The notes: generated by a model not told the origin, from the letters alone. DNA of 64,000 nucleotides from Takakia lepidozioides (GCA_030704615.1 CM060732.1:35340001-35404000); one strand, 5' to 3'. Counted from the first letter of the stretch, positions 29,803 to 64,000 are shown. Translations and numbers: made by a program.

Positions 29803-29804
29803 CT

Positions 29805-29816
29805 TGGTATCAGAGC
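29805..29816 (+). promoter_or_regulatory. Primer binding site, tRNA-iMet (TGGTATCAGAGC)
   Basis: Canonical plant iMet PBS, 2 nt after the LTR. Confidence 0.92.
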
Positions 29817-29857
29817 TTAGAGTTCAGTACGCGATCGTCCTTGGGATTGGCCTCATC

Positions 29858-38961: not shown

Positions 38962-39278
38962 TGTCAAGTTATTTTACCACTAGTGTGAAACTAGCTAGGA
39001 AATAGTTAGTTTTTACATATTGACATTTGGGATTGGCCCAAGTGTCAATCCAGGGGTCAAGGCAGATTTAGGCCCTGGAGTGGTTATCTTCACGGCAAGC
39101 GCGGGAGGCTCATCTTTCTCGAGTTGAGCCTCACCGCGCCTAGCTATGGCGCCGTAGTGTGGATTCCCCATGGCGTGGGGTGCACTTGGCTTGACTTGTA
39201 TTTGAGTGATGAGGTTATATATGCATGAGTTTATGCTTCAGATTTGTGAGCTTGTGCTTGTATTCTTCTTCTTTATCA
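38962..39278 (+). repeat. Element C terminal repeat A1 (317 bp)
   Basis: Matches 59601-59917 with about 5 transitions. Confidence 0.92.
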
Positions 39279-40789
39279 CTCGAGAAAGATGAGCTCGTAT
39301 CTGTGAGTGCCAGATACGAGTTAGTTGTAGCACTTGTGGTTTTTGCTTGAGAATGAGAGAAACCAAGTTGTTATGCAAGGAGCACCGTGGAGCTCTTGGT
39401 TGTTAGAAGCGGAGGCGATGTGGGTTACGAGGTGGTAGACCTTGGCATTCGATCTTCAGCTTCAGAGATGAAAGCACCATGCTGCAGGTAATTCCAGAGC
39501 ACCTTGATGGTTTCAGATTGTGTACATGCATGAGCAAGCACGATTGGGAAGAGGACCAGTCAAGAGCAGGTTATAGTGGCTTTGGTGGCAAAGCTGAGAA
39601 CTGGACTTGGGAATGCGAGCTTTCATTGTGAAGGATTGCAAGACCAAGCGAAAGGGCTGATTTGGCTTGGGGCAAATCAGTGCACTTTGTGGTGAGATTG
39701 GGTTTCAATCTCGAGCTTCAGCATTGAGAGGGCTCTTGTCATGGCAAGAGCAGGGCTGGAACAGAGCTAAGAGGTGCGGCAAGGCCATGGAATGTGCACC
39801 TAGGGTTTCAGAGCTTGGAAGAAGAGCTCTTGCACCACAAGAGAAGTGTCTTGTGGCTGGAAATGTAAGCCTTAGGGTTTCAGGAGCTTGGCAAAGGCTG
39901 TGGAGTGCTTAGTCTTGTCTTAGAGAGCATCAAGGAGCCAAGGAGCCAAGATAGGGGGCTGATATCTCTTGTGTGAAGAGGTTGCATGTGTGGAGCATGT
40001 ATTCAGCTCATTGAAGCTTCCATCTTCAAGCTTGGAGGGCAAGCAAGGAAGAGGGAAGGGCTGACTTCCCTTATGGGCAATGCATGTGTGGAGCATGCTA
40101 TCAGCCTGGTGAAGGCTTGCACTTTCAGGTTGGAGTGCAAGAAAGGAAGGAAGGGGCTGGTTTCCCTGTAGGGCATGTGGAGCATGCTTTCAGCCTGCTG
40201 AAGCTTGTATTTTCAGGTTTGTGGGTGCAAGAAATGAAGCAAATGAGCTAATTCTCTTATGGTGAGAGTGGGGCATGTGTGGAGCATGCCTTCAGCCCAT
40301 TGAGGCTCTTGTTTTCAAGCTTTAGAGAGCTAGAACGGAAGGTCTAGGGCTGGTTTCCACTTGGAGTGAAAGAAAAGCACTTGTAGGGCCTATGTGAGTT
40401 GGGGTTTCAACTTCAAGCTTGAAGGCGCAACTCTTGAAGTAGCAGGTGTAGGGGGCTGGAATAGGCTCTAAGACAGATGCTATGGCCAAGGAGAGTGCTT
40501 GAATGAGTGCTCACAAGGGCTGGGAACCAGCAGGGCTTGGTTGTTTGCATTGAGTTTAGCGGCGTGTTTGGGGAGGCTAAGTGAGAAAGAAGGCTTGGTT
40601 TGTGGCAACCACCTCATGGCTTAGGGCTACTATGGTGTGTGTGGGAGCCGAAAGAGCAAGAATACCTTGCTGATTTCCTCACAGCCACCATAGCTCATGG
40701 AAAGAAGCCTAGAGTCCAAGAGACACAACCCTAGCTTGGCGTGGCTAAACCCCTTGGAGAAATGGCTAAACTGCCAGAGTGGCCATGGA

Positions 40790-42206: not shown

Positions 42207-44811
42207 TTGATTGTCAACACGGAGGTGCCACTAGTTGCTGGGGACAGTGCCGGTTCGAGCACTAGCGATACTAGTGGGTACACGAGACAAGGTGTGCGGT
42301 TTAGGCCACCTTCACCTCCTGTGTCTTCTACGGAAGGTTCTGATTCAGATTGTGAATTAGGAGGACTCGTACCGGCGGTGCAAGTTGTTTCTTTGCCATT
42401 GTTGTGGGACACAATGGAGGAGATGTATGGAGCTACCAAGGGGCCACGAAGGTACTCTGGGGCGGTGGGCACCATCGAGTTGGATGATTTTATCCAAGAG
42501 TTTGATAGTTGGTGTGATTTGCAGCAAATGCGCAATCCACAACTATTTACGCCTTTCATGGCATGGAAGGGGTTGTTTCAGCACCTTGAGGAGCCGCCTA
42601 TGGATGATTACCATGTTCAGGCGGGGCATGAGGTTGAGATCGAGGAGTGGAGGATGTACTAGTCACCCGACTATGTCTCCATCACTAGGGGCACTAGAGC
42701 CAAGAGGGCAGTGGCTACACCTGCCGCCGGCAGCTTCAGCAAGTAGCAGAGGGACTAGTGGGACTGGTGGTACAGTAGCTACGACGTCCACCCAAGCCAC
42801 TACCGCACCAGCACTAGTACCCGTGCCTGCCTTCAACCCTGTTGTGGAGTTCTTCGAAGAGTTGAGAGGGAACTACCAAGGGGTGAAGACGGAGAAGTTG
42901 CGGAGCTTGCAAGAGTTCCAACGGAAGCCGACCGAGAGCTTGAGGGAGGCTTTCACTCGCATGAGGCGCTTGATAAATGTAACCCAAGGGGTTACGGAAG
43001 CTCAGGCAGTCCAATTCTGGTATGGGATATTGGACAAGGAGCTGAGGAGAAGGTGCGGGATGCAACTCTCCTACAAGCGGCCCAACCCACCTTAGCAAAT
43101 GTGTTTTTGCTGGCAGAGCGGATAGAGCTCAACATGGTGGAGGAACAAGTGGTCATGGTGGGATTTGCTAAGGAGACACCACGGGGTAGTGGTGCTCCTA
43201 GCCAACCACTACCTCAACGTGGTCAAGGCAACAAGGGGGCTCAGGTGAAGCCCAAGGAAGGGTAGAGAGGACCTCAGATGCAGGGGTCTCTCCCTTCATT
43301 TGCTGGCCAACAACGGGCGGATGTGGTGTGCTGGACATGTGGAGGACCCCATGTCAAGAAGGATTGCCTAGAGGGAGGCAAAGGGCCGGCACATGCACAG
43401 CCTGCACAATTGCAGTGTGGGCATTGTGGCAAACATGGGCATGGAGAGGCCCAGTGTTATGGTTTGCATCCTGAGTTGCGCCAAGCCAGTTCCAAGGGAA
43501 CAATGGTGGCCGGGGGCGAGGTGGAGCAGCCCAGAGAGGACGAGGTGGCCAGCCACGAGGGCAGGCCAAGGGCCAGCTCAACATGGCCAAGGACGCGGAG
43601 GTCAGGGTTGACCAAAGCATGGCCAACCGGCTTCAGCAGCTAGAGCAGAGGCTCGCTGCCATGGCTACAGCTCAGGTGGTACCGGCTCTAAGGCCGGATG
43701 GTCCACCTCCTGCTCCTGAGGGAGGAGATATGGGAGGCATGGGATTCATGTGTGGAGTAGCACTACCACTAGTGCAGGTGGAGTCTGCTGCAGCCGTGAC
43801 TCGAGGAGCAGCACGAGTTCCTGAGCCACGAGGTACAGAGGTGGAGTTGGATCCACAGCGTGGGGAGGCAAGCCGTCAGGCTAGGCTTCCTCAGTCATTC
43901 ACATTGGCGGAGACAGTGTCGACGCCATCCATGGCACCTAGTTCTCGCCCGACTGTTACCAGGCGGAGGTTACTATGATTGGGGAGAGCTACACGGGTAG
44001 CACCACTACCTAGTGTTGCCAAGGCTACGTAGCTAGTGTGCTGCTAGGAGCGGCCACATCTGTGTGCCAGGCTCCATTGTTCTCAGCTACCATGATTGCG
44101 ACGCCGGGGGTAAGACCAGCTGAGGTGTTCAGGCTGGCAGCTACACTCTGTGAGAGTGGGGAGGTTACTTCATCTTCTGCGGAGATAGTGGGAGGTGTAG
44201 TGCCGGAGGGATCCTCGGATTTGAGGGTCAAGACTGCCACGGCGGCGCCATGGCAAGCTGCAGCTGCCAGGTTGATGGAGCTGCCAGCTAGGCCAGCCAT
44301 TGAGCGCACCATGGTGACACTTGGAGTTGTCATGTTAGACAACCAGGATGGCATTTTCTGTTTGAGTGGACCGGCAGGCAGAGGTACCGGCCACTGCGGG
44401 TCTTGTTGGACTCGGAGCTCAGCCACTGATGCTGGGCAGAGCTGCTATTGCAGGCTTGGGCTTCACGGAGGCGATATGGAGCCTTGTCCTTTCCAGATAC
44501 AGACGTCTCTGGGAGGATCGGAGCAGGCTCGGGGCATGACACGGCGTGAGTGGCTATCAGACTACGGCCGGATCACCCTATAGATGGCTCAGTGATGCGA
44601 GCCAAGGCCATTGTGACAGACGCGGTCTCATACGATGTCCTGGTTGGTGGGGCAGTGTTGTACCCCATGGACTTCACCCTGGATTTTTGGGAGGCGTCAG
44701 CTTCCTATAGGCCTGCATGGCAGTCAGGGGAGGGCCAACGTGTGCAGCTCCCTGTGACGTTCATAGGAGGAGTTGCGGTTGCCCAGCTAGGCAAGATGCC
44801 AACACTAGCAG
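42207..44811 (+). pseudogene. Element C gag (two CCHC knuckles) and aspartic protease, frameshifted
   Basis: LDDFIQEFDSW, QKPTESLREA-like gag motif, CWTCGGPHVKKDC, CGHCGKHGHGEAQC, LLDSGAQP near 44404, YDVLVG. Confidence 0.8.
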
Positions 44812-45019
44812 CAGGGATGCCTCGGCGTGAGCCTGGTCACGTGAGCGCGTGAGCGCGACTGCGCTCACGCCACGTCACCTTGCGCAAATGCCACGTCACG
44901 GGTCTCAGTCCACGTCATCACACGTGGAGGCCGAGTCACCACGCACCCAGAAAGAAGTGGAGTGTATTCCCGCGGATTGGCACCCTTTACCTTGGACGAC
45001 ATAATAAAAGGCATTGAAT

Positions 45020-45370
45020 AAATGATGGATGAATGTACAGTTGGATGATAAACAGATGGATGAGTTTGAAAAATCTATGTAGATGGATGAATGACGGATG
45101 GATAAGAGTAAAATGGATGAATGTATAATGGATGTTGAGCAATGACAAAAATTCATGACAGGAAGATGCATGACCAAATCTTTTGACGAATGCACAAAGT
45201 ATATGAAATGAGTGTGGAAGGTTTGTGGGTGGATTAAAGAGTACAGAGGATGAATGTACAATGGATGTTGTACAAAGGAAGCTTTCATGAATGGAGCACG
45301 CATGAATACAGTGTAGATGAATGCACAATGGATATGAGAAGAGTCAGGAAGGTTTGTGAGATGGATTCAT
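45020..45370. repeat. Low-complexity ATGGATGA repeats in the MULE subterminal region
   Basis: Many degenerate ATGGATGA/ATGAATG units. Confidence 0.7.
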
Positions 45371-45495
45371 ACATATAGCAATTTAAACGAAAGTTGATTC
45401 TGTGATTATTATTTGTTCTAAAGGAACAACTACGGTAGAGTAAGGGGATTCAACGTTTTCCAGATAATATGAAAATGAATATTAAAAAATACAGT

Positions 45496-48400
45496 TCAGT
45501 CTGACTCAGAGTCAGTACAATGTATCCCCTCTTCCTCTGCATCTAAGTCTAAGTATTTTAGAACACCGGATCCACGCGGATACACCTACGGCTGGCCACT
45601 AAAAAGTCAGGGGATAGGGACTCGGACGCGTGAAGTGCCATTGCTTCGGCATAAACAGGGAGCAGAAAATTGGAAAGGGGGCTGTCGAAAACAGACTCGC
45701 CAGAAATGACTGTATCTCCTGAAGATCCACCGCTGCTTTCCTGAAAGACAGCCTGAAAAAGTTATTACTGTAACTTTGATGTTATCGAGAAATTGAGTAT
45801 GACTCCCAAAGAGGGTTTAGCACTTACTCACATGAAAAGTCGTTGTCGACCTGCTTATCTTCGGGATCGTCATCATTTCGAATATGAATCCGATCAGTCT
45901 GTGTGCCTGAAGTGGAGCCAGACAAAAGGGGAGGAGCACTGTGTTGTAGAGGTCAGAATCACCCTCCATACCAAAAGGCTTCTTCCGCCTGCCTTGCATG
46001 CGTGGTAAGTTGCTCCTGCACCAGACAGGAGAACATAAACAGTTTGGAGGAGGGGATTTAAGCAGATGAAACTGTTGAAAGGAAACCAATTCGGAAGGGA
46101 GAAAACGAACCTGTGGACACAGAAAGATCGACCACCCGTGCAGAGCGGTGGCTGCATGACTCCAGCAGTATTTGCATGAATGCTGGTGACTTTTCCTTTG
46201 CACCTCTCCAGGGAGTGCCATCTGGTCTCTTCAGAGTCTGACTGGACTGCATGAAGTTGTACAAAATGTCATCGACATGGGGCTCATAGGGGGGGTTGAC
46301 GAAACAACCCTGGTCAGAAATCTCAAAGCTGCGGATGGAGGATGGTGTCTTTGATGTGCGAATCCTCCGCAGGCAGATCGCCTCGAACATCCTCGTCTGC
46401 CAAAGATAGCAGGTTAGTGTGGTAAACACAATCTAAAGTGGAAGTGTGTACATCGGCTATTCAGAACTCTGACACCAAAAAACCATGAATCGTTGATGAT
46501 CGGTGTCGATCATAAAACATTCTACTAGAGTGGAGCTGCAGAGAAAATTGAAACTCATGATCAAAGCATAAGCAGAAGGCAGACGGCATACCAGCTGACC
46601 AGGGAAACCCCCTTTCACAAGGTAGAGGCTGTTCACACAATTCCATGTGCGCAAAACTTCAAACCCTGAAGACTTGAGGTATGATGCCAATGCCCGACGA
46701 CTATCATTGTCACATGACTGAAAAAGCAGAAGTGTCCCTGCATCAGAGAGGAAATTGTTACAGAACCCGAATACCCAACTCCAGTAGTTGTCCTCGAATT
46801 TGTTCCACCCTGGCGTCTTGCCCTTTGGAAGAACTTCTGGCACAGCCTGGCCATCCGGGATGTCGAGAATGACAATGTCGGCCGCATAAGTTTTCTGCAC
46901 ACCGCACACGAAGGTGGGACCTGTGCTCACCTGCAACAGACATGTTTTTTATAAGAACGATGGCAAGAATGTTTTCAAAGAACGAGACTGAAATACTGCC
47001 AACGAAACTTCAGAGAAAAAGGAAAGAAAGTGGAATTCTCACCAGATTGAGGAATGAGATTATTTGTCCCAGGTAGGGGATGGCACCCCAGTGTATCCTC
47101 TCTTTCGACTCTGCATCATCGAAAGCCAACCCTCATTAACAATTTTCATCTCTCCTGCTGAATCAGAACGGGAAGGGTGTGGCTTGGCATCGAACACGCA
47201 CTGAAGAGTGCGGGTATATCTTCCAGCACTAAAGTCCTGCCCACTCTCCATCTCCTTTTCATTCTCCTTCCCCTTGTCCTTTTCCTTCTCTTTGGACTTG
47301 TCTTTGTCCTTGGCTTTGCTGGTGAGATGGCTATGACATCAACAGCCTTGTCTTTTGGTTTGCGGCCCGCCTTCTTTCCCTTCTGCGGCGTTCCCTGAGC
47401 ATCAGGCTCCTTGGCAGCCAAGGTTGCTATGTTTCGTTGATACTCTTCGTCAGTCAAAGGCGCCAGCATCTCAGCGTTATTGTTCAAGTATTTCATATGC
47501 TGTTCTTGAAAGGTCGTGTGCTCAGGTGGGCAGTCAAGGTACCACCCACAGTCTCTGAAGTGAGAAGGACTCCAGTCCTTCAATATCCCTGCAGTATACA
47601 TGGTTGGATCGTTTGCAGGGTCCGACCACATGTCAAGATAGTCGGGAATTCCGCTCAGGTGATTTCCTTCCATAAGCACATATTTCGTGTACCTGAAAAA
47701 AGGAGATAAATCCCAACCCACAAAAGCGCTCAGTGAGTAAGATGCAAGTAGAACAGAAAGAATAAAACATGGATTGAAATGGCTCTGACAACTGCTCCAA
47801 GGACCTTTCAGGACCACACTACTGCTCCAGATATGAATGTCGTCAACGCCATTCAGAACATTCCATTCCATGACACTGTAATACATCCTAATCCAGGTGA
47901 ATGCAAATAAGCGATTAGAAATGACACAGACATAGAAGTGAATGTCGTCAACGACATTCAAGAATGAAGCCAAATTATTACTGAAATGAAGCAAAATCAC
48001 AGGATGGAAATAAAAAATTGAGTAAGGAACCATCCAGGAAAACTCAATGCACATTCATAACGAACCTATCACTGAGGACCTCACAACATCACTGTATGTG
48101 AATGGCGTCAACGCCATTCACAAAAATACAAAAAGAAACCAATTACTTAGCTCCCCAATCCATGAAATTGAATTTGTCGTTTTGAATAATACAGACACAG
48201 CTGTGAATGTCGTCAACGACATTCACTTTGGATTTCTTAAAACAGAGCTTATCAAGCCTCCATATTCATCGCAAGAGGAAAAAACAATGCAGAACAACTG
48301 AATGTCTGCATTGACATTCAGCAAAATGAAGTGATCAACCCTCATGTAACCTCTATGGACATTACAAAAATTTAAATAACCTTGAGGACCACACAACAAC

Positions 48401-50464
48401 TCCGTGTGAATGTCGTCAACGCCATTCAAGGACATTATCAATTCTAATCAGGGACAATATAATTGCACCCTTAGATCCTAACCAGGTGAATTCATATACT
48501 CGCTTAAGAATGACTCAGACAAAGAAGTGAATGTCGTCAACGACATTCAATCTGGATCTAAGATTGCAATCCATATGAAGCCACAATTTTTCCCAAAAAA
48601 ACAGTAGAGTTCAAGTATGACATTTCACCTGTACACAACTCGCATCATGGCCCACTCTCCTCCAACCTGACTGTCAAAGTCGTTGGACCGTAAAATGTTA
48701 CCATCTTTGGAGAACTCCCGGAAAAAACAGTATCTCCAGGTGAGACCTCTCCACTTCCTTATGTATGCCTCCAATGACATTTGGGGAGGGGAAACAATCG
48801 CAATGTTCAGGTCCTTCAAAGTCTGATCCAGCACAATGACGGCGCGCTTTTCGAGCTGCAAATAGTATATTTGTCAGAATTGCAAAAAAGAACACATCAC
48901 ATACTTGAAGAGAAGAAAACAGCATGTTCGAATACACACCTGACTCCAAAATGTAGCCTTGTGGAGCCAGTTATCAAACACCAAATCACTGATTCCTTCC
49001 ACCTTTGTGCCAGGCTGTATGGTGCTCTTTGGGAACTGATTCAAGTCCTTTACTGTTTGATCTGAGTTCCATATCTCCAGCCACCTTATTTTTGTTTGTG
49101 GGTCGACCATCGATATGGCCAGCCGGTGCAATTTCTCCTGCTGCATCTCCGGATGCACATGCTTGTCATAGTGTGTTTTGATCTGCTGAAGGAACTCAGG
49201 ACCAAGTCCAGGATCTACTATTCTAAGCTGCTTTCCGAAGGCTGACATCAATTTGGTTCTTCGCATCTCAAACTCCTTCTTTATTGCAGCTTCCACACCC
49301 TTTGATGTCCTTAGTTCCTCTGGTGTAGTGCGGTAATATTCGGATTTTCCCTTCTCAGCTGCCTCTGCCAGTTCTTGCTGCATTCATTCAAGTAGTGATT
49401 AGCTCCGAAGGGACTCTAAACATGTATTCGAAAAGTAAACAGATTACAGACTCGGGCTTACCGCATACATGTACTCCAGAAACGCCTCTCGTGTCAAAGA
49501 ATACCAAGTGCCTGCAGCTTCCTGTTTCGCACTTCTTGATGATATTGGGTGGTAGTACTGTCCGAAAATCATCCAGCTTCATCAGACCAATCCTCTGAAT
49601 TCGGAATAGTGTGTGAACCAAGCTTGTTGTCACATGCGATTTCTCTGTCGATCTGCAAAAACATTGAAAACATTGCATTCCTTAACACTGTTTTTTTGAG
49701 GATCAACAAGACACTACAGAGGGAATCAAATCTCCTGGATGACTTACTTGTTCACGTCGTGCATAGCTGTAAGAAGCCTAGCGATGTCGTTTCCTGATCC
49801 AAAACCATTGCCTCCACAGCAACATGCTTGTCTTTGTCTTTCGAATGGTGTTTCTGAATGTATCCCATCCATGCCAGCAATCGGTGGTTGCCGTCCCAGA
49901 CGTAGAACATGTGGTTGCAAAATTGCTGGTGTTTCTTTCCCATCATGAGGCCCAGCTCGAACTCCTCATTGGCATCTTTCCAGCACTCATCCCAGTTATC
50001 ACTGATCTCTGGAGAAACTAATGTGCTTTTCCCATTTATATCCGTCAGTGACACATAAAAAACTTGTGCACCAAGTCTATATCCATGCACAAAATCACTC
50101 TCCAATTTTGTTATGTCATGGGAAAGAGGTGGACGCACAACAGGCATTGATATCATCCGGCACAGAGGTATGTCCAGACGCCCTCCAGATACGAGCATGT
50201 CCCTTATAACCTCCTGAGAGTTTACCTTCTGGAATGACATGAGTTCTTTCACCTTGTCAAGGTAGTGCACTTCGGATTCATCTGCTTCATCTGTATTCTC
50301 TGAGCTTTTTGCGGACTCGTCCCCATCTCCAGATCCTTTCCCCTCTGATCCTGTAGGCTTCGACCTCACAGTTTTCTGCACGATGCCATTCAGTTCTGAC
50401 TAAGTGATTTGCAAATAGTGAATGGCGGTAACGACAATCACTCTGTATCAAGGAAACTCACCAT
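45496..50464 (-). CDS. Spliced MULE accessory gene: ParB/Srx-like N-terminal domain plus C-terminal beta-class N4C/N6A DNA methyltransferase-like domain (some apparent frameshifts)
   Basis: ATG|GTGAGT at 50464. FYVWDGNHRLLAW in exon 50399-49748. ADIVILDIPDG...FLSDAGTLLLF in exon 46930-46592. EKSPAFMQILLESCS...VVDLSVSTG in exon 46396-46111, spliced to ATYHACKAGGR...MEGD from 46015. Introns are GT-AG. Confidence 0.72.
47834..48549. repeat. Array of seven 22-bp palindromes TGAATG(T/G)CGT-CA-ACG(A/C)CATTCA in intron 47693-48628
   Basis: Copies start at 47834, 47939, 48099, 48204, 48299 (variant core), 48407 and 48528; spacers are diverged. Confidence 0.9.
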
Positions 50465-50581
50465 GAATGGTGTGAAAGAATTCAGCACAATCTACAGCAA
50501 AGCCGAGACTTATGATTCTTCAACAGACGCAGTAAAGATACTCTGGCGATAGCAAGGTTACTCGATGATGAGGAAGTCACA

Positions 50582-53500
50582 ATGGATTTGCATTGTTCTG
50601 GACAATAAATGGCTCCATCTTTTGGAGAAAGAGGTTTACGATCTCCTGATGAGACTCTCATATCAGCCAGTGGAGAGTGCGAGAGTACTTGGAGAGCTCG
50701 GCGAAAGTCCCTTGGGTCATATGTGACGCCCGGGACTGCTGCTTCGGTCGTTGAAGACAAGAGGGAGGTGGTGGTGAAAAAAGAAACAGACTTCCTCCAC
50801 TCCAATCGTTGAGCTTTCGGATTCTTCCGATGATGACATAAGTGAAATTCCAAATCCAGTCCTTCCTACTGTGGTTGCAGAAGCTGATGAAGAAGAGATT
50901 TGTAGTGTCATTCCAAAATTGCGGGCGATGGGAGGAATGGCTGGATTCAAAGTGAGTTGCGGGGAATTGATTGGGAATCTTTGAAGCAGGTGCCTGTGAA
51001 GTTCTTGCCGGAGACTTTTGATGGCGATATCCTATTCGAGCTGCCTCCTCCTCCGCGAGTTGAGGTGTAACAATCATGATGCATGGAATGGACAAGAAAC
51101 ACGACGGGCACCCGTGGTGCAGAACAAAAACATCCAATATTCAGAATGATGACAAGCTTGTTTTCAGGAGGACAGTTTGCAATGGACACCTTAGGTGTGA
51201 TAATTTGAATTGCAGACACTTTCTTCAGTCTGGAGTTCATAATCAAAGCGAATGGGAGGGTCTGGCGAGAATCCATTTCAGCCTGGGACTGCCCCTCCAC
51301 CGGCAAACACTTTCGTCTGCAAATTCTGCAAACTTGTGCCATCCTGCTTGGCGCTCTGCGGAGCAAGAATGTACTATGTTGTCCACCGTTTGAATACAAT
51401 GACGAGAGCTTGTGTGCATTTTGGATTCCATAACCATCCTGTCTCGAAGGGGGATTACAGGGAGAGTGTTGAGACAGTATCGAGGTTGATCAAACAGGAG
51501 TTCGGGAGAAACCCATCCGCAACAACATCTGCAATTGCTTGGCGCAAAAGTCCTTCTTGGAAAGCCATATTTTGAGTGAAGGAGATTCTGTGGGGACTAA
51601 ACTTGACGGTGCAGCATTGGACCTGGTCATGGATCATTTCTCCACTTTAAGTTCACCTAACATTCGGCATCAGATCAATGCATTGAGAATGGGCTCTGGG
51701 ATCAGAGGCTACATAGACAATATTTTGGAATTGAAACGACTGAGCAAGTACGATTACATCCAGGACAATGTATTCCCAGGTCAAGGTGCCATCAAAGTTT
51801 TTCTTTTCAAAATGTCGACTGTTGGGGAGGGCAGTGGGGTTAGCCTCGTGAAGCGGATGCAGAAGACTGGGGACTTGCAGAACTGTTTTCTTATGTTTGA
51901 TCATGTGAAACGAGTGAAGGATTGGACGACAATGGCTTGTCATGTCTACGATCCAGTGTACCAACGAGTTATGACAATTGCAGTTTGTGACATGCAATCC
52001 GAGGATACGGAATCCCAGAAGCTCATGTGGAATTCCCTGATACGTGTCATGGGCTGCCATGGGCTGCCATCTCCAAATTTCGCAGGTTTCATGGCGGATA
52101 GTGCTCAAGCAAATTTCAATGCTATTCGTATTGTCTTCGGATCGGGCGACCCAAAAGTGCCTATGCCAGGAAGAGAGCGTACATGTCTATTCCATTGGAC
52201 ACAATCTCTGGAAAAACATACAAGTCGGACATCAAACCAGAGATGCAGACTCAGCACCGTAAATTGTGCAAAGAGTACAAAGATGCTAGAACAATGAAGG
52301 AGGCGGACACTTTGTTCCAGACAATTCGTGCCTGGTGGTTCTCTTCTGGAGCTGCATCACTTGAGAGTATGAGAGCATTGGAAGATTGGCTGGCGTTTTG
52401 GCACTTCCGGTATAGACAGTGGGGAGCAGCCATGACAATGGTACGAGGCTTCTATTTCATGCTTTATTCATACATTTGCTTTCCATATTTTTTGCTTTCT
52501 TTCTTGTTTGTTTCCTGTGCACTATTCTGAAGTGTGGTTATCCTCTTTGCAGAACATGTCCATTGAGGAAATGGCAGACATGCCATCTTGCAATTTGGCA
52601 GAAACTGTGCACAATGCATGGTTGCAGCAGTCTGGGAAACGAGGTCGGGATTTGTATGTGGCAACAACAGATGATTTGATACGTGCCTTGCAACAACAAA
52701 CCCGATACCGTGATTTCTTACGAGGTGGGGTTGGTGGCAAGGGTCCGGACAAATCGGAGTTGATGTGCGTGCTGCAAACAGATCTGGGGATCCAATCAAG
52801 ATAGCACGGGCGGTGAGCATGTATGCCCAGGGAACGCCACTTGTTTCTAGAGTTCCACATCTTGAAGGGGAGGAGAGATTCGGCTCCTGTAAGAGGAAAT
52901 TGAACACTCCACCTGGTTCGGATTCAGATTCCCACAGGGCAGACCGTGATAACTTCTCGAAGCCTCGTGTTCCCCTGCATGACAGCTCCGTGTCCGGAAC
53001 CTCCATTGTGGAGGAACCTCCAACACGACGGCAAGCTCCAGCATCAAACCGTGCCACTGAAATGGTGCAGGAGAGAAACAACCCCCTTGATGTGCTTGAG
53101 TCCGCATGCCCCGACCACGTTTGGCACATAGAACGCACAAGTGTCGGGTCTCGTGTGAAATGTACAGCGATCAGGGCAACTAATTTCGAGAAGTGCACTT
53201 CATCTATATCCAGAGGTGGTGCCCGAACTCCTGCTCCGACTTTCACGGGCTTGATGCGTCCATACGGTCAACCAGAAGCCAAGAACCACAAGTTCTGGTT
53301 CTGCGCAGATGATTGTGCCAGATGTGTGCATGGAACTGTGCGTCCTTCCGTAGTGATGAAGCCATCTCCTCCAACCGTTTGGCCCGTGAAGGTGGGAACA
53401 CATCTCAGCTTTCAGGAGATTGAAATGCTGGAGGAGGCAGGTTTTTCCCTTGCGAGACAACCCCAACTCCATGCATGTGCTACTACTCCTGCGTCCTCCC

Positions 53501-53937
53501 GGGTCCCCCCGGCAAATCCTGACTTGTGGCCAACCAAACGAGATGGAAAGCTCGTTCGGCGTTTCCCTCCAACCGCTGAACACTTTGGCAAAGTGGAGTC
53601 CGCAAGAATGCTCCAAGCTCGTGTTGGAAGCACCACGGAAGTACCCGATCCAGGATATGGTCGGGTATTCACAATCATCACTTCCACATCTGCTGTTCAT
53701 GACAGGACCTACGACATCACGGTTTCCAATTTCCCCAATTGCACATGTCCTGATTTTGTGAATATGCTATCAACCAGTTTGGGCAAGAGAGGTAAATTCA
53801 TACCCTGCAAACATTTGTATTTCATATTTTTGAGGAGGATGGTTTGCGATCCCAAACGTGACAACTTCATTCACCAGGCCACTATGAGTTTCAACGAGGT
53901 CGATACTCTTTTGCAGCGGGATACAACACATGGGTAG
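50582..53937 (+). pseudogene. MULE transposase: acidic N-terminus, GCM-like Cys-rich domain, DDE core, SWIM zinc finger; intron about 52441-52552; frameshifted
   Basis: FLMFDHVKR, FMADSAQANFNAI...CLFHW (the MULE D...CxxH signature), CNLAETVH, CTCPDF...PCKH. Start codon uncertain. Confidence 0.82.
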
Positions 53938-54859
53938 CATGAACTATGTAATGTGGTATGTGGATGACCATGATTTGAAATGTGTAATTCACATCAATTC
54001 GTCGGCTGTGCAATGATATGGCCTCCAACTATACGGAGTGAGGTCTGAGTGACAACTTTTAGGTAGTGCACATTTGTCATTGCACCGTTCGAAGTCTACA
54101 TGTCTTGCTGTCGCTATGCACTACAATCATCTTTTGAAGATGATCATAACTCTCATTGTTATTTGAGGAGGGAGGAAGTCTTCTCGTGGCAGCCTTTATG
54201 GCGCACACTTTGTGAGGATATTTTGTCGTCTTCGTAATTGTAAAAGTGAAACAAACATTTGTAATTGCACAATGTTGGATGCTGCAATTGTAGGCCTCAA
54301 CGCTCGTCTTGATTCTATTTAGGCAAGATTCCCTGCATTAATTCCACGGTCATAGGACCATCCACGGTTATAGGCGGCGCATGTTAATGCTGACGTGGCA
54401 GTTGACGGACAGTGCCACGTCATCATTTACCGCACATCAGCATGCTGACATGACGCTCACGCCACGTCAGCATGTGTGCAGGCTCACGCCACGTCACTCC
54501 TGCGTGAGCGTACGCTCGCGCGCTCACGTGCAACGCTCACGCCATTGCGTCGTTGCACTAGCAGCATTCACAGCGGCAGTGAGTTGGCCTAGAGAGTTGC
54601 TTGGGGCAACGCTCATCAGAGGATTACCACCTCCAGAGAGCAGGATGACATGTATGGTATGGCGGAGTTGCCTACCATGGTTGCTCAGACTCCATTGGGG
54701 GCACGAGCACGGATTTGCATCGGATTGCTGATCGACGAGTGCAACAAGCCTGGGTGGAGGCTTTTGTACCGTCAAGATGAGGAGAGTGCGGGGATTGCAC
54801 CAGGACCACCTCAGTTTCTCCATTGGATACCACACCTATTGTGTGGCAGGTATCCGGAT

Positions 54860-55800
54860 GAAGGCATTTGTCTTCTAAACTTGTTTGGCGGGATCAGCAC
54901 CGGATTGGCTGTTGTGTTACAGGCAGGTGTATGAGTTGGGCGTTATCTGTATGTGGAGAGGGAGACTGCATGTCGCGTTTCACTTTGCCATGTTGCTCAT
55001 GGTGCAGCGGTACCCTAATTTTTGTCGGTGTCTGCAATTCGTGGATTAAGCAGGCCTTGCCAGCAGACATTTCGTTGCTGGGGGGCGCATGATTTGGAGC
55101 GGGTTGGCTCCATTGATTTGTAGTGGCAGTTTGGCCCTGCCAAGGGCATCATCAGCCGGCATGGCAATGATGGATTGCGAGACTCGAGGTCGGGTCTGTT
55201 TTGGGAGATGGTGCGGGTTTTGCGCCACTTGCAGCTTCATCAAGCTGTATCTCCAGCATACATCTTGGAGAATGTGCCACTGATGGGCGATTCTCGGGCC
55301 AGGGTGATGGCCAGTGTGCATCAAGTCGGTTGTGGCTTGGGTCAGCAGTGTTGCTAGATGCAGCTACAGTGGGGTCACGGGCTCATCGTCCACGCTATGG
55401 TGGACTAACTTGATGCCACCCGCACTGCTCAAGCGTGCATTTGATGGGGTGCAGTGGCCAGCACATCTCACAGTGGATAGCATTCTGGACACAGGGAGGC
55501 AGTCTCAACATATGAGACACAATAACCGTTCGCCTTTGGCAGTGGTCAACAAGGTGGGTCAACCACGAGCAGCATTACCCACACTGCTCAGCTTCCCAGG
55601 ATCGCATGCTTTCCGGGATAGTGGACCTGGCCTCCTATGGGATGCTCAGTTGCAGCAGTTAGTGGAGCCTAATGCTGACGAGCGTGAGCGGGCAATGGGT
55701 TTTACCACTGGTACCACGGCGGTGTCTCTCTTTCTGAGGCATCACGTCATCAAGTGTTGGGGCAAGCAATGGATCTCAATTGCTTGACCTGGATTATCAG
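54860..55800 (+). pseudogene. DNMT3-like cytosine-5 DNA methyltransferase domain within element C pol
   Basis: Motif I LLNLFGGISTG, IV WPCQG (55132), RSGLFWEMVRVL, VI YILENV, VIII SRAHRPR.WWTNL, IX ERERAMGF and X VLGQAMD, in the correct order across frameshifts. Confidence 0.88.
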
Positions 55801-56159
55801 CTTGGCTCTGCTGAGCAACGCAGAGTGCGGAGTACACTTCCCTCGATGGTCTCTCTGCCTACCGAGACGGTACAGGCAGTGAGTGGGGGCGAGCATGTGA
55901 GGACCACGGGGTGCATGCATCCATGGCACACGTGGGAGGTGCTCGAGGTTCAGAGGGAGTTGGCAGCCAAGGCGGCTGTGATGATGAGGTTGGGGATTCT
56001 TCTCGGGTTGAGGAGGTCCTCAAGGATGAGATGATGGGGCAGGGATGAGGCCTTGTCATTGACTGAGCAGGCATGGAGTACTGCTCAAGAGGTTGCAACA
56101 TAGCAACCACTGGACGCGTCCTCTACCTCTAAGCCCACTGGACTTAAGGTTGCAGTTAC

Positions 56160-58980
56160 GGAGGACAATTGGGAGCCTGACATTGGACCCATTGTCACCG
56201 GAGGAGAGAGACGACGTATACGGCGGTTCCTGAGGGCTTACAGGAATTGCTTTGCCTTCAGTTTGAAAGACTTGGGAGCACTGAAGGGTCAAGAGATCCG
56301 TATTGAGTTGGCCACTGACACGCCAATCTTTCGGAGACCCTATAGATACAGTGACATGGAGAGGTCTTTGATTCAGATGAGGACTCAAGATCTCTGGGAG
56401 GCAGGTTTGGTGGAGCTCTTTGGTGGAGAGTATGCTTCAGCCACAGTGATGCCAGCCAAGAAGGATGTCTATGCAATTGGACGGAGAGACGTATGTGCGG
56501 TGATTACCGGCCTGTAAATCGTCAGACCAAGTCCGATAAGTATGCCATGCCAACACCAGAGGAGATCTTTGATGCCATCGGGCATGCTAAGGCCTTTAGC
56601 ACTTTGGATTTACGATCCGGATATCACCAGTTGCCAATCAAGGAGGCGGACAAGCAGAAGACGGCATTCTGGGGGATCAATGAGCACGGCAAGGATTGCC
56701 TATATCAGTGGCGGTTCTTACCATTTGGGCTTAAGAATGCTCCTGCAGAGTTTCAGAGAGTCATGGAGGATTCTAGCAGGGGTGGACTTTGCTCGGTGCT
56801 ACATAGATGACATCATCATCTTTAGTGTTACGATGGAGGAGCATGAGAGACCCTTCAGGTGGTATTGGAGCGCTTGAGAGCGCACGGATTGAAGTTGCAT
56901 CCGGGGAAGTGCAAGTTTTTCCACAACCAGATTGAGTATCTGGGTCACATGATATATCCTGGAGGATTGGGGATACAGCAGACTAAGGTAGAGGCCATTG
57001 CACAAATTCCACGCCCCACGGATGTGAGCCGAGTTCGAGCTTTCATGGGGTTGGCAAACTATTATAGACGGTTTGTCAAGGGATTTAGTACCATTGCAAA
57101 GGCTCTAACCAAGCTGACCAAGGTGGACCAAGAGTGGCAGTGGGAAGATGAGCAGGAACGAGCTTTTCAAGAGCTCAAGACGAGGTTGACCTCGGCGCCT
57201 ATCCTCACACAGGTGGATGATGAGGGAAGAGAGTTCGTAGTGGCTTATGCTAGCCGCTCGAACAACGCTGCAGAGGCTAAGTACAGCTCATATGAGGGAG
57301 AGTGCTTAGCTGCAGTGTGGGCCGTGACACACTTCAGGTGCTATCTATACGACAATCTTTTCACCCTTGTCACGGATCACCAGCCACTCAAGTGGTTGAT
57401 GGAGTCAGACAAGCTTACGGGGAAGCTTGCACGGTGGGCACTCATACTCCAGGAGTATGACTTTCAGGTTTTGCATCGACCGGGTTTGGTCAATCGGGAT
57501 GCGGATGGATTGAGTCGCAATCCATGCATGAGCCAGCAGGATGACACTGGAGCTCGTGGCATGGTGAGACGGACGAGGAGATGGTGCCGGGATGGCACGC
57601 ATCTGCATTTTTGTGTATCTTGGCATCGGGGAGGTCAGGTTGGACCTACAACAGGGATGACTGTAGACGGAGTGTCTGAGGACCCTGAGGCTAGTGATGA
57701 GTCAGGTGGTGCCAGAGATATACATGAGGATTTTTGTGTTGGACTACCTCCGCACGGGAGACACGCAGCCACTGTGACTGCCAGGGAGAGGGATCGGATC
57801 CTGCAACGAGCCAAGAGGTTCAAGTGGGAGGGGATACACCTACTTCGAGTGTAGGAGGATGGTCGGGTGAGGATTGTGCCTCACCCCACACAGCGTGCAC
57901 GGTTAGTGCGCATGCCCATGAGGAGTTGGGGCATTTTGGAGTGCGACGCACTCACAGTTTACTGCAGGGGCAGTATTGGTGGCGTGGTATGCATACAGAG
58001 GTGCAACAGTTCGTGGCTAGGTGCATGGTGTGTGACAGGGTGCGTGCTTCATTCAAAACCCCTACACCACAGTTGCATCCTTTACCAATCATGGGATTGG
58101 GCTACAAGTGGAGTCTTGACTTCGCAGGGCCGTTGCCACTGACTATGCGCCACCACAGATATGTGTTGGTGATGGTGAGCACTTCTCCAAGTGGATTGAG
58201 TTGGTTCCATTGCCTGACAAGGCTAGTGAGGGGGCTGCGTATGCATTCTTGGATCGTGTGCTTAGCCGATTTGGTGCTCCAGCTGAGGTACTCACGGACC
58301 AAGGGAGAGAGTTCTTGGGGGAGTTTCAGGCTTTGTGTGATAAAGCCTTGATAGACCACCGCACCACTTCTCGGGATCATCCTGAGGCCAATGGCTTAGC
58401 AGAGAGAGTTGTTCAGACGGTGAAGAGGGGTTTGCGCAAGTATGGCTTGCAGAAGGGACACCTAGGAGATTGGGATCTTCAGGTTCCTTGGTTAGCCATG
58501 GGCTACAGGTTCAGCAAACAAGCATCACTTGCCTCTTCTCACCATATTTTCCTTCTCTTTGGCCGAGAGCCGGATTTGCCTGCAGCCATTCATAGGGACA
58601 CTGCTCAAGTCCTTAACCTTGACGATCCGGATGTGTGGGTACGTGCATGTGATCAGCGTGTAGAGTTGTTCAAGAAAGTCATGCCCATGGCTTTTGAGAA
58701 CCTTGCCATTGCACAGCACCGTGATACGTTGAGGTATGCCACTATACGTGGTGATATCATCCTGGGGTTCGGAGGTTTAGCCCTGGTGACTATGTTTATT
58801 TGCAGCAGACTGCTCCTACGACTCTGGATGTTACTGCAGGGCGTGTTATTCTGAGGGTTCGAGAGGTGTTGCCCAGGGGTCCTGATCTTGGAGGGTCGGG
58901 GATGGCATGACTTGGAAGGACCATGTGCGTAATTGTGCGCCATGTCACCTTCCCAATGTCGATGGCAGAGTTGACCCAAA
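56160..58980 (+). pseudogene. Element C RT, RNase H (N-terminal part deleted) and integrase
   Basis: [77 protein letters not shown]. Confidence 0.92.
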
Positions 58981-59008
58981 CTTGGCAGTGGTACCTGCAG
59001 GTTTGAGG

Positions 59009-59152
59009 TGCATGCTCTGTGGGTCTGCCAAAGGGGCAGCCACCATGCTGGTGTGTGATCGATGCTCAAGGGGTTGACATATGGGATGCTTGACACCACC
59101 TCTTGAGAAGGTTCCTTACGGAGATTGGTTGTGTCCACACTGCTTGGGATAG
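59009..59152 (+). pseudogene. PHD finger at the element C integrase C-terminus
   Basis: CMLC...MLVCDRCSRG*HMGCLTPPLEKVPYGDWLCPHC gives the C4HC3 pattern; premature TGA at 59075. Confidence 0.88.
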
Positions 59153-59409
59153 TGGCAGTGGACATGACTGGAGGCAGCTAACAAGACATGGAGGCCAAGC
59201 TCATAGGAGTCAATACATGAGATCCCAAGCTCAAGTCACATGTTGCAAGACGGCGACTAACGATGGGGCAACTCTTGCACCCGGCCTCTTGATCTATCGA
59301 GTTTGAGTGCAGTAGGGATAGTGGTGGAGGACTTATTGAGGCTATGGTCACTATCACATCTTGTGGCTATTTGGACTTAGAGGGACCTAAGCACCAGCTA
59401 GGGGGCGAT

Positions 59410-60106
59410 TGTGTGGACAAGTGACTGCCATAGTGGGCAGCATAGTGGTAGCCTAGTGACTGACTAGTTGTAGCCTAGTGGTTGGACTAGTGGCTGGACT
59501 AGTGGTGGACTAGTGGTATACTAGTGTGTGGTGTGCACATGTGTTGTGTGGTTTTGGACAGCGATGTAGTTTGTGTAGCAATATGTATGCGCACGACAGC
59601 TGTCAAGTTATTTTACCACTAGTGTGAAACTAGCTAGGAAATAGCTAGCTTTTACATATTGACATTTGGGATTGGCCCAAGTGTCAATCCAGGGGTCAAG
59701 GCAGATTTAGGCCCTGGAGTGGTTATCTTCACGGCAAGCACGGGAGGCTCATCTTTCTCGAGTTGAGCCTCACCGCGCCTAGCTATGGCGCCGTAGTGTG
59801 GATTCTCCATGGCGTGGGGTGCACTTGGCTTGACTTGTATTTGAGTGATGAGGTTATATATGCATGAGTTTATGCTTCAGATTTGTGAGCTCGTGCTTGT
59901 ATTCTTCTTCTTTATCATTGTGTGGACTAGTGACTGCCATAGTGGGCAGCATAGTGGCAGCCTAGTGACTGACTAGTTGTAGCCTAGTGGTTGGACTAGT
60001 GGCTGGACTAGTGGTGGACTAGTGGTATACTAGTGTGTGGTGTGCACATGTGTTGTGTGGTTTTGGACAGCGATGTAGTTGTGTAGCGATATGTATGCGC
60101 ATGACA
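59410..60106 (+). repeat. Element C 3' composite terminal repeat: B1 (59410-59598), A2 (59601-59917), B2 (59919-60106)
   Basis: B1 and B2 differ at about 5 positions; A2 matches A1; PPT-like AGGGGGCGA precedes B1. Confidence 0.92.
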
Positions 60107-60110
60107 CAGT

Positions 60111-61059: not shown

Positions 61060-64000
61060 AAGTCTTCATACCCGAGAAATTTGACGGGACGAGATCAAGA
61101 TTTCGCGGTTTTGTTCAATAAGTACAATTGTTCTTACGACTACATCCACAACGTTACCCTGATGAAGGTATTCAAGTAGGATTCGTGGGCACCCTTCTAT
61201 CAGGCACTGCCCTATCTTGGTTTGCACCGCTATTAGAGAAAAATTTGCATTCACTATACTATTTTAAAGCGTTCATGTCCGAGTTCACTGCAACGTTTGG
61301 AGAGAATGATAGAGAGAGAGTTGCAGAGACAAAGATGTGAAATCTTCCACAAGGAGCACGTCCAGCTTTCGTTTATGATGTCGAATTTTGACAATTTGCG
61401 TACGACCTCGACTGGAATGAGAAGAGTCTCATTAGTCAGTTTCAATGTGGCCTAAAAGAGGATGTAAAAGATTTGTTACTGACAATGCCAAATGTGAATA
61501 CATTGAGCGAATTCATCACCCAAGTCATTGCATGCGATAATCGTTTGTTCGAAAGACGTCAAGAGAAACGATCTGGATGGTCGACGACGCACCATGCCGC
61601 TGCTACTACGGCACCAAACATAACGATCCATCAAACATCCGGTAATGATCCTATGCAGATTGATGCTGTCCGATTCAAACCATTGACGCCACAAGAAAAA
61701 CATAAATGACGCTCGAATGGATTATGCATTTATTGCGGAGAAGACGATCACATATCATTAAACTGCCCCAACAAGAGAAGATTCAAAGCTCAGGGCACAA
61801 CTCAAGTGTTCGATACGAGGAGGTCGAAAAACGAAGATGTCCAGTTACAGTAGGGACCATGCGGCTAGACACCCCAAATTCCTCAAAAAAAAAAGGTCTT
61901 TTTCTACCTCCAGACCCTGTACCTTGTTTCACAGTTCCAGTAAAGATCAGGATGCAAAATCGAGATATCTCCATAGAAGCACTTTTGGACTCGGGCGCTT
62001 CAGCATGTTTTATTGACAAAGATTTTGCGAAACAACATAATTTAACGCTCGTAAAGAAGAAATTTTCGGCCCCTCTTGAAGTCATCGATGGACGACCGTT
62101 AGCATCAGGAAATATTGACCATGAAAGTCGACCCCTTGAAGTGAAGCTTAATAATCAAGCATCACAAATTGTTTTCAATGTCATCCAGTCTCCAACGGAT
62201 CTTGTGATCCTTGGACTTCCCTGGTTTGTACTTCATAATCCTGACATCGACTGGTGATCATGAAAATTTTTGGCAGGACACAAATGCAAAAGTACCAAAG
62301 GTATTCAACCTCTGTTTCTTAGAGCTAGAGCCTTCATGAAAGCTACGAAGAAAGACGTAACATTTGCACTTTATGCAAATCCAATCAAAACCACAACAGA
62401 CCAAGGTACTTCGACATTACCTACTCAATATCAAGATTTTAAGGATGTTTTTGAGAAGAAAAATGCAGACATGTTGCCAGAACATCAATCTTATGATTGT
62501 GAAATTGAGTTACAAGAAGGAGTTCAACCATCATTCGGCCCAATCTATAATTTATCTCAGACAGAGCTAGCTGCTTTACGCGAATACATTGATGAAAATT
62601 TGTCAAAGAATTTCATTTGACATTCGAAATCACCCGTGAGAGCACCTATCTTATTTGTGAAGAAGAAAGACGAATCGTTACGCATGTGTGTGGACTATCG
62701 TGGGCTCAACAAAGTCACTATAAAAAATCGTTACCTACTACCGCTGATTTTCAGACTCCTCGAATAACTTGGACGAGCAATTTTTTTTACAAAGATCGAC
62801 TTGAGTTCACTGTCTATACCGATCACAAAAACCTCAAGTATTTTATGAGTGCTCGTGTTTTGAATCGACGTCAAGTGAGATGGAGTATGTCACTAGCAAG
62901 GTTTGATTTTGTTATTACATACCGTCCCGGACATCTTCAAGGAAATCCAGATGTTCTTTCTCGACGATCGTATCTTGCGCCAAAAGAAGATGATGCAACT
63001 TTTGACCAACAGAAATCCATCATCTTGAAACGAACAATTCTCCAATTGAATATCTTATTCATGTCCACCTATGACGATGTAGAAATCATAAAGGAGATTC
63101 AGGAAGCACTGAAGAGCGACCAATTTGCGACGACACTATGAAGTCAACTAAATCGACCTCGAGACAACCCACATGTTACAAACGACTTTGAATTCAAAGA
63201 TGGCTTACTTTATTTCAAGGGACTTCTCTATGTACCTCCAGGACTTACACGACTTCGAATTCTTCAAACATGTCATGATCTTCCGGCTGCAAGAGATTTC
63301 GGTTTTAACAAAACAATGGAATTGATATCCAGGAACTATTGGTGGCCGCAGGTGTGGAAACTCGAGATTTTTTTTGTAAAATCTTGTGACACCTATGCTA
63401 GGGCGAAGGGACCATGACATCGACGTTACGGCCTTCTTCAACCAATACCCATTCCCAAAAGTCCATGGTCGTCCTTGTCTATGGACTTTATTACGGAACT
63501 TCCAATTTCTAAGACCACCGACTCAATCCTTGTTATTGTGGATTGTTTTACGAAAATGGCACATTTCATTCCATGTAATAAGACGGTTACTGGCGAGGAA
63601 ACTGTAAGACTCTTCCTCAATAATATGTACCATATTCATGGACTCCCGAAGGACATCGTATTTGATCGAGGACCACATTTCATATCAAATTTGTGGAGGG
63701 GATTATTTCACATATTGGATACTAAGATCAACCTCTCTACAGCTAATCATCCACAAACTAATGGTCAAACCGAACGCGTAAACCAGATTTTGGAGCAATA
63801 TCTTCGTTGTACGATAAATTATCACCAAGATAATTGGACGGACTTTTTGCCATTAGCTGAGTTTGCCTACAACAACACTATACATTCTTTAACCAAGCAA
63901 ACTCCATTTTTCTCCAATTATGGTCATCATCCTCGAGCAAACCCTTTCCACATGAAAACTGTTGGAGCCCTGCTACAGAAAACCTTGCTACTTATCTTGC
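61060..64000 (+). mobile_element. Element D: second degenerate copy of the element A family (gag, PR, deleted RT/RH, IN), running off the window
   Basis: Reverse-complement similarity to A coding regions; LLDSGAS; jump from RT KIDL to RNase H VYTDHKNL near 62805; many stops. Confidence 0.9.

Follow-up and report, generated by a model that had tools for sequence, protein, structure and literature searches.

How can a retrotransposon that encodes a DDE integrase carry the split, permuted end repeats that have so far been regarded as a hallmark of tyrosine-recombinase elements? The question is raised by a Ty3/Gypsy-type element of Takakia lepidozioides that lies in CM060732.1:35340001-35404000, a stretch of 64,000 nt that we call the window and whose positions are used for all coordinates below. 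Textbook retrotransposons with long terminal repeats (LTRs) are defined by two identical LTRs, a feature on which LTR-finding software relies. The window element has a single repeat unit, A, at its 5' end and the block B-A-B at its 3' end, and we found the same layout in relatives from green algae and mosses. On balance, we lean toward a cycle in which the ends of the complementary DNA (cDNA) would be joined and the integrase would then open the molecule at a palindrome inside the LTR.

Ends and repeat layout of the window element

Repeat borders were obtained by self-BLAST and repeat finding on the window, followed by base-by-base reading of the junctions. Self-BLAST matched 38958-39278 (A1) with 59597-59917 at 98% identity and 59408-59607 (B1) with 59917-60114 at 96.5% identity, and a 30-mer from the start of A occurred exactly twice in the window, where the chance expectation is 0. 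The end repeats follow the order A1-internal-B1-A2-B2, with A1 standing alone at the 5' end and internal sequence directly after it. The features of the two ends, with their evidence in parentheses, are:

38958..38961, no strand: left target site duplication, CAGT (single CAGT in the empty-site paralogue)
38962..39278, + strand: A1, 317 bp, TGTCA...ATCA, with TGTCA as the integrated left end; would hold the 3' part of the unique 3' region (U3) plus the repeat and unique 5' regions (R-U5) (98% identity to A2)
59400..59408, + strand: polypurine tract AGGGGGCGA, directly 5' of B1 (G-run at the same place in all relatives)
59409..59598, + strand: B1, 190 bp, ending ...CGACA; would be the 5' part of U3 (repeat comparison)
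59595..59604, no strand: perfect palindrome GACAGCTGTC, GACA-GC-TGTC, at the B1/A2 junction; proposed integrase site (ACA-NN-TGT conserved in every B-A-B locus)
59599-59600, no strand: spacer GC between B1 and A2 (junction reading)
59601..59917, + strand: A2, 317 bp (match to A1)
59918..60106, + strand: B2, 189 bp, with right end ...ATGACA; its first base, T (59918, the joint base), likewise stands after the purine tract before B1 (match to B1)
60107..60110, no strand: right target site duplication, CAGT (junction reading)
61411..61414, - strand: empty-site paralogue, in which CAGT is uninterrupted; belongs to the second, inverted copy of the host repeat (BLAST of 37637-38961 to 62733-61411 and of 60107-60454 to 61414-61067)

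Because the inverted paralogue crosses one single CAGT, the inserted unit is exactly A1 to B2 and the 4-bp duplication is real. A1 and A2 differ by five transitions over 317 bp, and B1 and B2 by four substitutions and one 1-bp indel over about 190 bp. At the A2/B2 joint the end of A meets the start of B. The two half-sites that form the outer ends of the insertion, the start of A and the end of B, also stand head to head, 2 bp apart, at the internal B1/A2 junction. TG...CA termini (TGTCA...TGACA) and a target duplication in the 4-6 bp range (CAGT) are present, as in Ty3/Gypsy retrotransposons, and so are the split direct repeats A1...B1-A2-B2. Two identical complete LTRs, one per end, are absent here (A only at the 5' end, B-A-B at the 3' end) and likewise in the relatives.

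An earlier reading of the window, made from its sequence alone (the sequence-only reading), had described a 317-bp A at the 5' end, a polypurine tract followed by B1-A2-B2 at the 3' end, a clean 4-bp duplication flanking A1 and B2, and a palindromic B/A junction. The layout was confirmed to the base by self-BLAST and junction reading, the duplication is CAGT and has an empty-site paralogue, and the palindrome proved to be conserved across the clade with an invariant 2-bp spacer.

The permuted layout in relatives

Only one copy of the family lies in the window, as might be expected if its layout were a one-off aberrant integration or a local rearrangement of a conventional B-A...B-A Gypsy element. 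We annotated A and B in 80 metagenome loci that encode relatives of the integrase and in further loci retrieved by exact-protein look-up. The A...B-A-B layout, or its 3' block, was present in about 18 independent insertions, drawn from moss-associated metagenomes, two algal-type metagenome contigs, and the genome of Chlamydomonas eustigma. Complete moss-type copies number four (L018, L047, L058, and L085), and the two GC-rich algal-type contigs (L104 and L106) combine A...B-A-B with intact polyproteins of 2,000 residues. The copy in the NCBI genome of C. eustigma (L110) is also complete, with A1 at 5014-5482, B1 at 16168-16239, the spacer GC, A2 at 16242-16880, B2 at 16881-16952, and the duplication ATCA.

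A second form, A-internal-B, accounts for about 23 further insertions, ends in the same ...ACA terminus, and is about as common as A...B-A-B. Perfect 4-bp duplications flank 11 copies over both forms (ACCT, CCTA, GTAG, ATGG, ATAA, ACAA, AATT, ACTT, AGGT, ATCA, and, in the window, CAGT); in four older copies the duplication matches at 3/4 bases. The two forms are interspersed on the integrase tree, so the form of an insertion is a property of the copy and not of the lineage. A-internal-B copies may be primary products or the result of B1xB2 deletions, and the interspersed tree would fit either.

At each of the roughly 19 5' ends examined (~19/~19), the start of A lies next to unrelated flank. 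Neither B nor A-B (including A-B-A and B-A) was found upstream of A1 in any of these ~19, and no conventional copy was seen. The sequence-only reading had proposed searching other copies for conventional B-A...B-A ends; that search returned none, and A...B-A-B with a 4-bp duplication was found clade-wide. A one-off event is refuted by this distribution: it would have to account for about 18 independent insertions in distant hosts, for the lack of a conventional copy among about 19 5' ends, and for the conservation of the palindrome, and we give it next to no probability. Judged from these sequences, the permuted layout is clade-wide in green algae, mosses, and liverworts. The host range covers chlorophytes (shown for C. 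eustigma; Haematococcus and Monoraphidium by protein similarity only), mosses, and liverworts. The family is present in many copies in the source organism; in one contig the start of A is immediately preceded by unrelated sequence, and another contig runs across the A/B joint with indels, because of which it must come from a different copy.

The same data bear on whether the 3' end could be an assembly artefact, with LTR pieces in tandem collapsed or joined wrongly. The whole 3' end is not spanned by any one public contig and is covered by short Logan contigs only, and two Marchantia polymorpha copies have assembly gaps exactly at the 3' block. The joints in the short Logan contigs that skip 511 positions reflect the B1/B2 ambiguity only. 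Against an artefact stand the exact 4-bp duplication, which matches the empty site in the window, the identical architecture in independent assemblies made by different methods (including an NCBI genome), and the differences between B1 and B2 and between A1 and A2 at several positions, which mark them as distinct copies. The assembly is thus supported indirectly, through the empty site and the recurrence of the layout in independent assemblies, and we consider an artefact exceedingly improbable.

Several relatives showed features of their own. In Marchantia polymorpha GCA_001641455.1, runs of N lie directly before the last 40-110 bases of B (L001, 11878-12488; L092, 13507-13962); the position of these gaps, at the expected B-A-B block, suggests that the layout broke the short-read assembly. 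A GC-rich algal-type relative (L105, 1-20469) comprises 1.8 tandem units with a period of 11,535 bp and one mismatch in 8,934 bp, and has a single B-A with the palindrome TACAGCTGTA between the internal regions; the alternatives are a tandem in the genome and a circular molecule. Three young elements were assembled as cycles (L107-L109) and hold no terminal information; L108 and L109 are the same 14.3-kb contig in different rotations. In L106, two additional open reading frames (ORFs) lie between pol and the purine tract (12150-14759), one of 661 and one of 192 residues. A 780-bp repeat pair in L086 was considered as LTRs and rejected as an unrelated repeat.

A conserved palindrome at the B/A junction

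The left end has the consensus TGTCATG in 17 copies, and the integrated right end in the clade reads ...CACGACA. In every B-A-B locus the internal B/A junction is ACA-NN-TGT, which equals the right end, 2 bp, and the left end. The spacer is always 2 bp long and its sequence varies (GC, GT, AC, AT, or TC). A spacer of constant length and variable sequence would be expected if both strands were cut after CA with a 2-bp stagger.

Predicted priming sites and the LTR of reverse transcription

In every copy, B1 is immediately preceded by a G-run purine tract. At the 5' end, a stretch within A1 is complementary to the sequence at the A1/internal border:

39108..39124, + strand: predicted self-primer within A1, at which the transcript is also predicted to begin (exact reverse complement of 39278-39294 over 17 nt)
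39278..39294, + strand: predicted primer-binding site adjoining the end of A1, of the Tf1 self-priming type, with no tRNA match (complementarity to 39108-39124)

RNA folding of 39106-39300 pairs the self-primer with the primer-binding site (z = -7 against shuffles), and the complementarity is kept by different sequences in the moss copies and L093, a compensatory change. The arrangement resembles that of self-priming elements such as Tf1 and is predicted to place the start of the transcript inside A.

Since the purine tract adjoins B1 and the primer-binding site adjoins A1, the LTR of reverse transcription should be B+A, which agrees with what the sequence-only reading had proposed. U3 would then consist of B and the first 146 bp of A, and R-U5 of the rest of A. 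Canonical strong-stop synthesis should yield a linear cDNA B-A-internal-B-A, of which the integrated copy would be a circular permutation, and the A2/B2 joint would be the right end of this cDNA joined to its left end. A different division was also weighed, in which A+B is the real LTR, its 5' copy has lost B through a deletion, and B1 arose as a secondary duplication. A2 and B2 are contiguous, have TG...CA ends, and would look like a 507-bp LTR (317 + 1 + 189 bp). Under that division, however, the primer-binding site should adjoin a B and the purine tract should adjoin A2, whereas they adjoin the end of A1 and B1, and the supposed deletion must recur in about 19 independent 5' ends. We therefore regard an A+B LTR as very unlikely.

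The ends defined by reverse transcription are not TG and CA in the relatives. B starts with ATACATG and A ends in ...AAT in the mosses, and in C. eustigma B starts with AGTAGTG and A ends in ...CTT. The earlier observation that A and B both begin with TG and end with CA holds for the window copy, but TG at the start of B and CA at the end of A are not conserved. The integrase does not seem to use these termini, since they are not conserved as TG/CA.

The joint between A and B also varies. Some related copies have AT there and others lack it, while the border between the purine tract and B1 is constant. At the A/B joint of L013 there is an extra TC, which corresponds to the first two bases of the primer-binding site of the moss group, TCTAGAAAAAC; that site is known from relatives, as the L013 locus lacks its own. 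The A/B joint thus behaves like a junction made afresh from joined ends. In the moss copy L058 (1391-1991 and 11050-11670) the A unit is about 600 bp long and extends about 280 bp past the primer-binding site. Its A/B joint falls within the leader, as would result if priming of the minus strand had once taken place further downstream.

Possible routes from transcript to permuted copy

On balance, we judge it probable that an end-joined cDNA is opened by the integrase at the palindrome within the LTR, which would give A-internal-B-A-B. In this proposed cycle, transcription would start inside A1 at about 39108, and the 5' end of the RNA would fold back onto the primer-binding site, as in Tf1, and prime the minus strand. 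Ordinary strand transfers would then produce the linear cDNA B-A-internal-B-A, whose own ends would not be integrase substrates. The end of A would be joined to the start of B, either by end-joining into a circle of the 2-LTR type or through a jump of the plus strand, once its template ends, to the other end. A 2-bp staggered cut by the integrase at the palindrome of the upstream LTR would leave two recessed CA-3'OH ends, and these would be inserted as A-internal-B-A-B with a 4-bp duplication. Cleavage of the palindromic LTR-LTR junction in 2-LTR circles is known for retroviral integrases (PMC1905944, PMC1180852). The downstream A, as the source of R for the next cycle, would be kept only in A-internal-B-A-B, and only that form would found new copies. 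Copies of the A-internal-B form would be dead ends, which could arise from cuts at both palindromes, from cut 1-LTR circles, or from later B1xB2 deletions.

Several points weigh against this cycle. Its circular or end-joined cDNA intermediate and its transcript ends are deduced from the arrangement of the repeats and priming sites. A free 2-LTR circle has two identical palindromes and predicts A-B-A-internal-B as often as A-internal-B-A-B; A-B-A was found at 0 of about 19 5' ends, compared with about 18 B-A-B 3' ends. Because A-B-A-internal-B was never seen, an extra asymmetry is needed. One possibility is that a plus strand at the end of its template jumps to the other end, so that the joint and the second B would arise only on the 3' side. 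The long A2 unit of L058 would need an aberrant priming event. One contig, from a run that is only guessed to be RNA, spans the A2/B2 joint, and if this contig is truly RNA, the joint could pass through the transcript instead of being remade in each cycle. All of the bryophyte copies examined are decayed. The sequence-only reading had likewise suggested a 2-LTR circle opened at the internal palindrome. The conserved palindrome speaks for this suggestion; random opening, however, predicts A-B-A...B copies, which are absent, and the circle would be only one way of bringing the cDNA ends together.

The same asymmetry is explained without further assumptions if the ends are regenerated by reverse transcription as in PAT and Ngaro elements. 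The RNA would run from inside A1 into B2, incomplete cDNA ends would be completed by a template switch onto the internal B1/A2 junction, overshooting it, and 3'-processing at the conserved CA would trim the ends. No circle or end-joining would be involved, and the A2/B2 joint would be inherited through RNA. PAT and Ngaro have split direct repeats of just this layout (PMC4157794), and the Klebsormidium repeats were called DIRS-like by de Mendoza et al. (PMC5890265). This route also turns the constant 2-bp spacer into the dinucleotide removed in 3'-processing, agrees with the contig that spans the A2/B2 joint, and would allow the odd A2 of L058 simply to be inherited. The RNA label of that contig's run is a guess, however, and no primer site was found beyond B2. 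The purine tract before B1 and the self-priming site after A1 fit canonical strong-stop synthesis, whose ends would be the start of B and the end of A rather than the start of A and the end of B. In addition, the A/B joint shows small indels between related copies within stable surroundings, which fits better with a joint that is remade in each cycle. We consider regeneration by template switching unlikely, although far from negligible.

The reading that we prefer, in which joined cDNA ends are opened at the palindrome, would have a wider consequence. In the Gypsy clade that bears a PHD finger and usually a DNA methyltransferase (DNMT), and that would extend over chlorophytes, charophytes, mosses, and liverworts, the integrase site may have moved from the cDNA ends to the palindrome within the LTR, with obligate integration from end-joined or circular cDNA. 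We put this forward tentatively, as a possibility that we rate below an even chance. If true, it would be a natural and ancient case of integration through an intermediate of the 2-LTR-circle type, opened by the integrase in the manner of a restriction enzyme. It would also be the DDE-integrase counterpart of the DIRS/PAT/Ngaro strategy, possibly with an episome-like stage in the life of an LTR retrotransposon.

Coding content

The ORFs of the window were searched with Pfam and compared by tblastn with a better-preserved relative (L002), as they are broken by frameshifts. Pfam matches on the + strand comprised gag (weak), RVT_1, RT_RNaseH, Integrase_H2C2, and rve. By tblastn, the window element is colinear with L002 over gag, protease, DNMT, reverse transcriptase, RNase H, DDE integrase, and PHD:

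42429..43873, + strand: gag, degenerate and frameshifted (weak Pfam Retrotrans_gag match; tblastn to L002 gag ORFs)
44281..44765, + strand: aspartic protease region (tblastn to an L002 ORF with Asp_protease_2)
44811..54503, no strand: foreign nested insertion of about 9.7 kb in pol, borders approximate (L002 colinearity broken at 44765-55091; weak inverted repeat 44811-44843 / 54471-54503)
55091..55398, + strand: C5 DNA methyltransferase (DNMT) remnant in pol (tblastn E = 3e-17 to a PF00145-annotated L002 ORF)
56155..57206, + strand: reverse transcriptase (Pfam RVT_1 1e-13; tblastn to L002)
57210..58746, + strand: RNase H, H2C2 zinc finger, and DDE integrase core (Pfam RT_RNaseH 4e-29, Integrase_H2C2 5e-15, rve 6e-6; tblastn to L002)
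58901..59143, + strand: PHD finger region, C-terminal to the integrase (tblastn, 72% identity to the PHD part of P0043, PF00628)

The Pol order of Ty3/Gypsy elements, protease - reverse transcriptase - RNase H - DDE integrase with gag upstream, is present, and the window element is a degenerate Ty3/Gypsy-type retrotransposon that encodes an integrase. Its length of 21.1 kb is due to the roughly 9.7 kb of foreign DNA between the protease and the DNMT; this nested DNA is mostly minus-strand coding and has GTGAGCG-rich ends. Because of frameshifts, the direct Pfam match of the DNMT region is sub-threshold (E = 0.011). A DNMT domain was found in 38 related loci, and the relatives also carry rve. 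Among named proteins, the closest matches are those of Marchantia polymorpha, at 80% identity over the integrase, and of Calypogeia and Sphagnum. Taken by themselves, these matches point to a bryophyte host, most likely a liverwort. The sequence-only reading had reported no tyrosine recombinase, and none (phage-integrase domain) was found in the window ORFs scanned with Pfam, in which DDE integrase domains are present.

The surrounding host repeat

The element lies in a host repeat (28572-38961 and 60107-60454) with an inverted second copy at 64000-61067 of about 90% identity; one of the two copies carries both nested insertions. The host repeat is a retroelement in its own right and has a minus-strand gag-like ORF at 60169-60714. 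It also holds a conventional LTR retrotransposon at 29080-36073, with LTRs of about 740 bp (TG...CA) and a tRNA-iMet primer site, TGGTATCAGAGC, directly after its 5' LTR; the empty site of this element is found in the inverted paralogue at ~63493-63495. This conventional element is an internal control, as it shows that ordinary LTR elements assemble normally in the window. Farther away, a tandem array with a period of 236 bp occupies 3998-4726 (about three copies, 94-99% identity).

Significance

The exact ends, the 4-bp duplication, and the conserved palindrome with its 2-bp spacer are new here. So are the priming sites from which B+A follows as the LTR, the occurrence of two integrated forms with their polarity, and the breadth of the host range. 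The clade presents a DDE integrase working with split, permuted repeats. Because it spans hosts from Chlamydomonas-type algae to liverworts and conserves ACA-NN-TGT throughout, we argue that the layout represents an ancient and functional way of replicating rather than debris. For retroviruses there has been a long dispute over whether cDNA that is circular or end-joined can serve as a productive substrate of integration, and the clade offers natural material for this question; it also bears on the origin of the DIRS-type layout. Standard LTR tools will overlook or wrongly annotate permuted elements, which can also break short-read assemblies, as the gaps in both Marchantia copies suggest.

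Comparison with known systems

The only earlier mention of such an element that we found is one figure legend from 2018. In their Fig. 4c, de Mendoza et al. (2018, Nat Commun, PMC5890265) ascribe to KnitGypsy-Dnmt3 of Klebsormidium nitens a DIRS repeat structure (A-coding-B-A-B) together with Gypsy domains. Termini, target duplication, palindrome, primer sites, and mechanism are all absent from that paper, which regards the acquisition as confined to the Klebsormidium lineage. Our literature search on split or permuted LTRs in Gypsy elements found nothing beyond PMC5890265, nor any other mention of the KnitGypsy-Dnmt3 family. The likeness, drawn by description only, extends to a Gypsy polyprotein, a Dnmt3-type methyltransferase inside Pol (the DNMT at 55091-55398 in the window), and A-coding-B-A-B, whereas the host is a charophyte alga there and a bryophyte here. 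No Klebsormidium proteins were among our matches (DNMT representatives, cluster names, and long polyproteins), in which Marchantia, Calypogeia, Sphagnum, Haematococcus, Chlamydomonas eustigma, and Monoraphidium were named. On these features we class the window element as a further member of this barely described, KnitGypsy-Dnmt3-like kind.

PAT, Ngaro, and other elements of the DIRS order have the arrangement A1-internal-B1-A2-B2, with an internal B/A junction identical to the joined termini (PMC4157794). The window element shares this layout, and the comparison with these split direct repeats in the sequence-only reading was apt. The enzymes and ends differ: PAT and Ngaro encode a tyrosine recombinase, and the window element has a DDE integrase, TG...CA ends, and 4-bp duplications. 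DIRS-order elements are not known to produce target duplications on integration.

For retroviral 2-LTR circles, cleavage of the internal palindrome of two viral ends, with release of 3'-processed ends, has been described for the foamy virus PFV in cells and for the HIV-1 integrase in vitro (PMC1180852, PMC1905944). The window B/A junction has the same form, end + 2 bp + end. In retroviruses, however, the palindrome exists only in the circle, whereas here it lies in every LTR and is apparently the sole integration site, with cleavage predicted from sequence.

As in Tf1 and sushi elements, a putative primer-binding site next to the LTR of the window element is complementary to an upstream stretch of the same LTR, the predicted 5' end of the RNA; self-priming, in which no tRNA would be involved, is predicted from sequence and fold. 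Tf1-type elements have ordinary identical LTRs, in contrast to the permuted split repeats described here.

Two further Gypsy lineages deserve comparison. Troyka, which the sequence-only reading had named as having a similar layout, is also an unusual Gypsy-like lineage with atypical termini, but its defining traits are CG...CG termini and 3-bp duplications, and its LTRs are ordinary ones, not split repeats (Kojima 2025, PMC12440569). With its TG...CA ends, 4-bp duplications, and split repeats, the window element is not a Troyka, and that identity was rejected. The active, PHD-bearing Gypsy-7a_cRei was described in the Chlamydomonas Genome Project v6 (bioRxiv 10.1101/2022.06.16.496473, Fig. 8A legend) as having LTRs of the ordinary kind, save that the last 8 bp of the right LTR are missing from the left one. 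Gypsy-7a_cRei could have the same permuted layout with a very short B.

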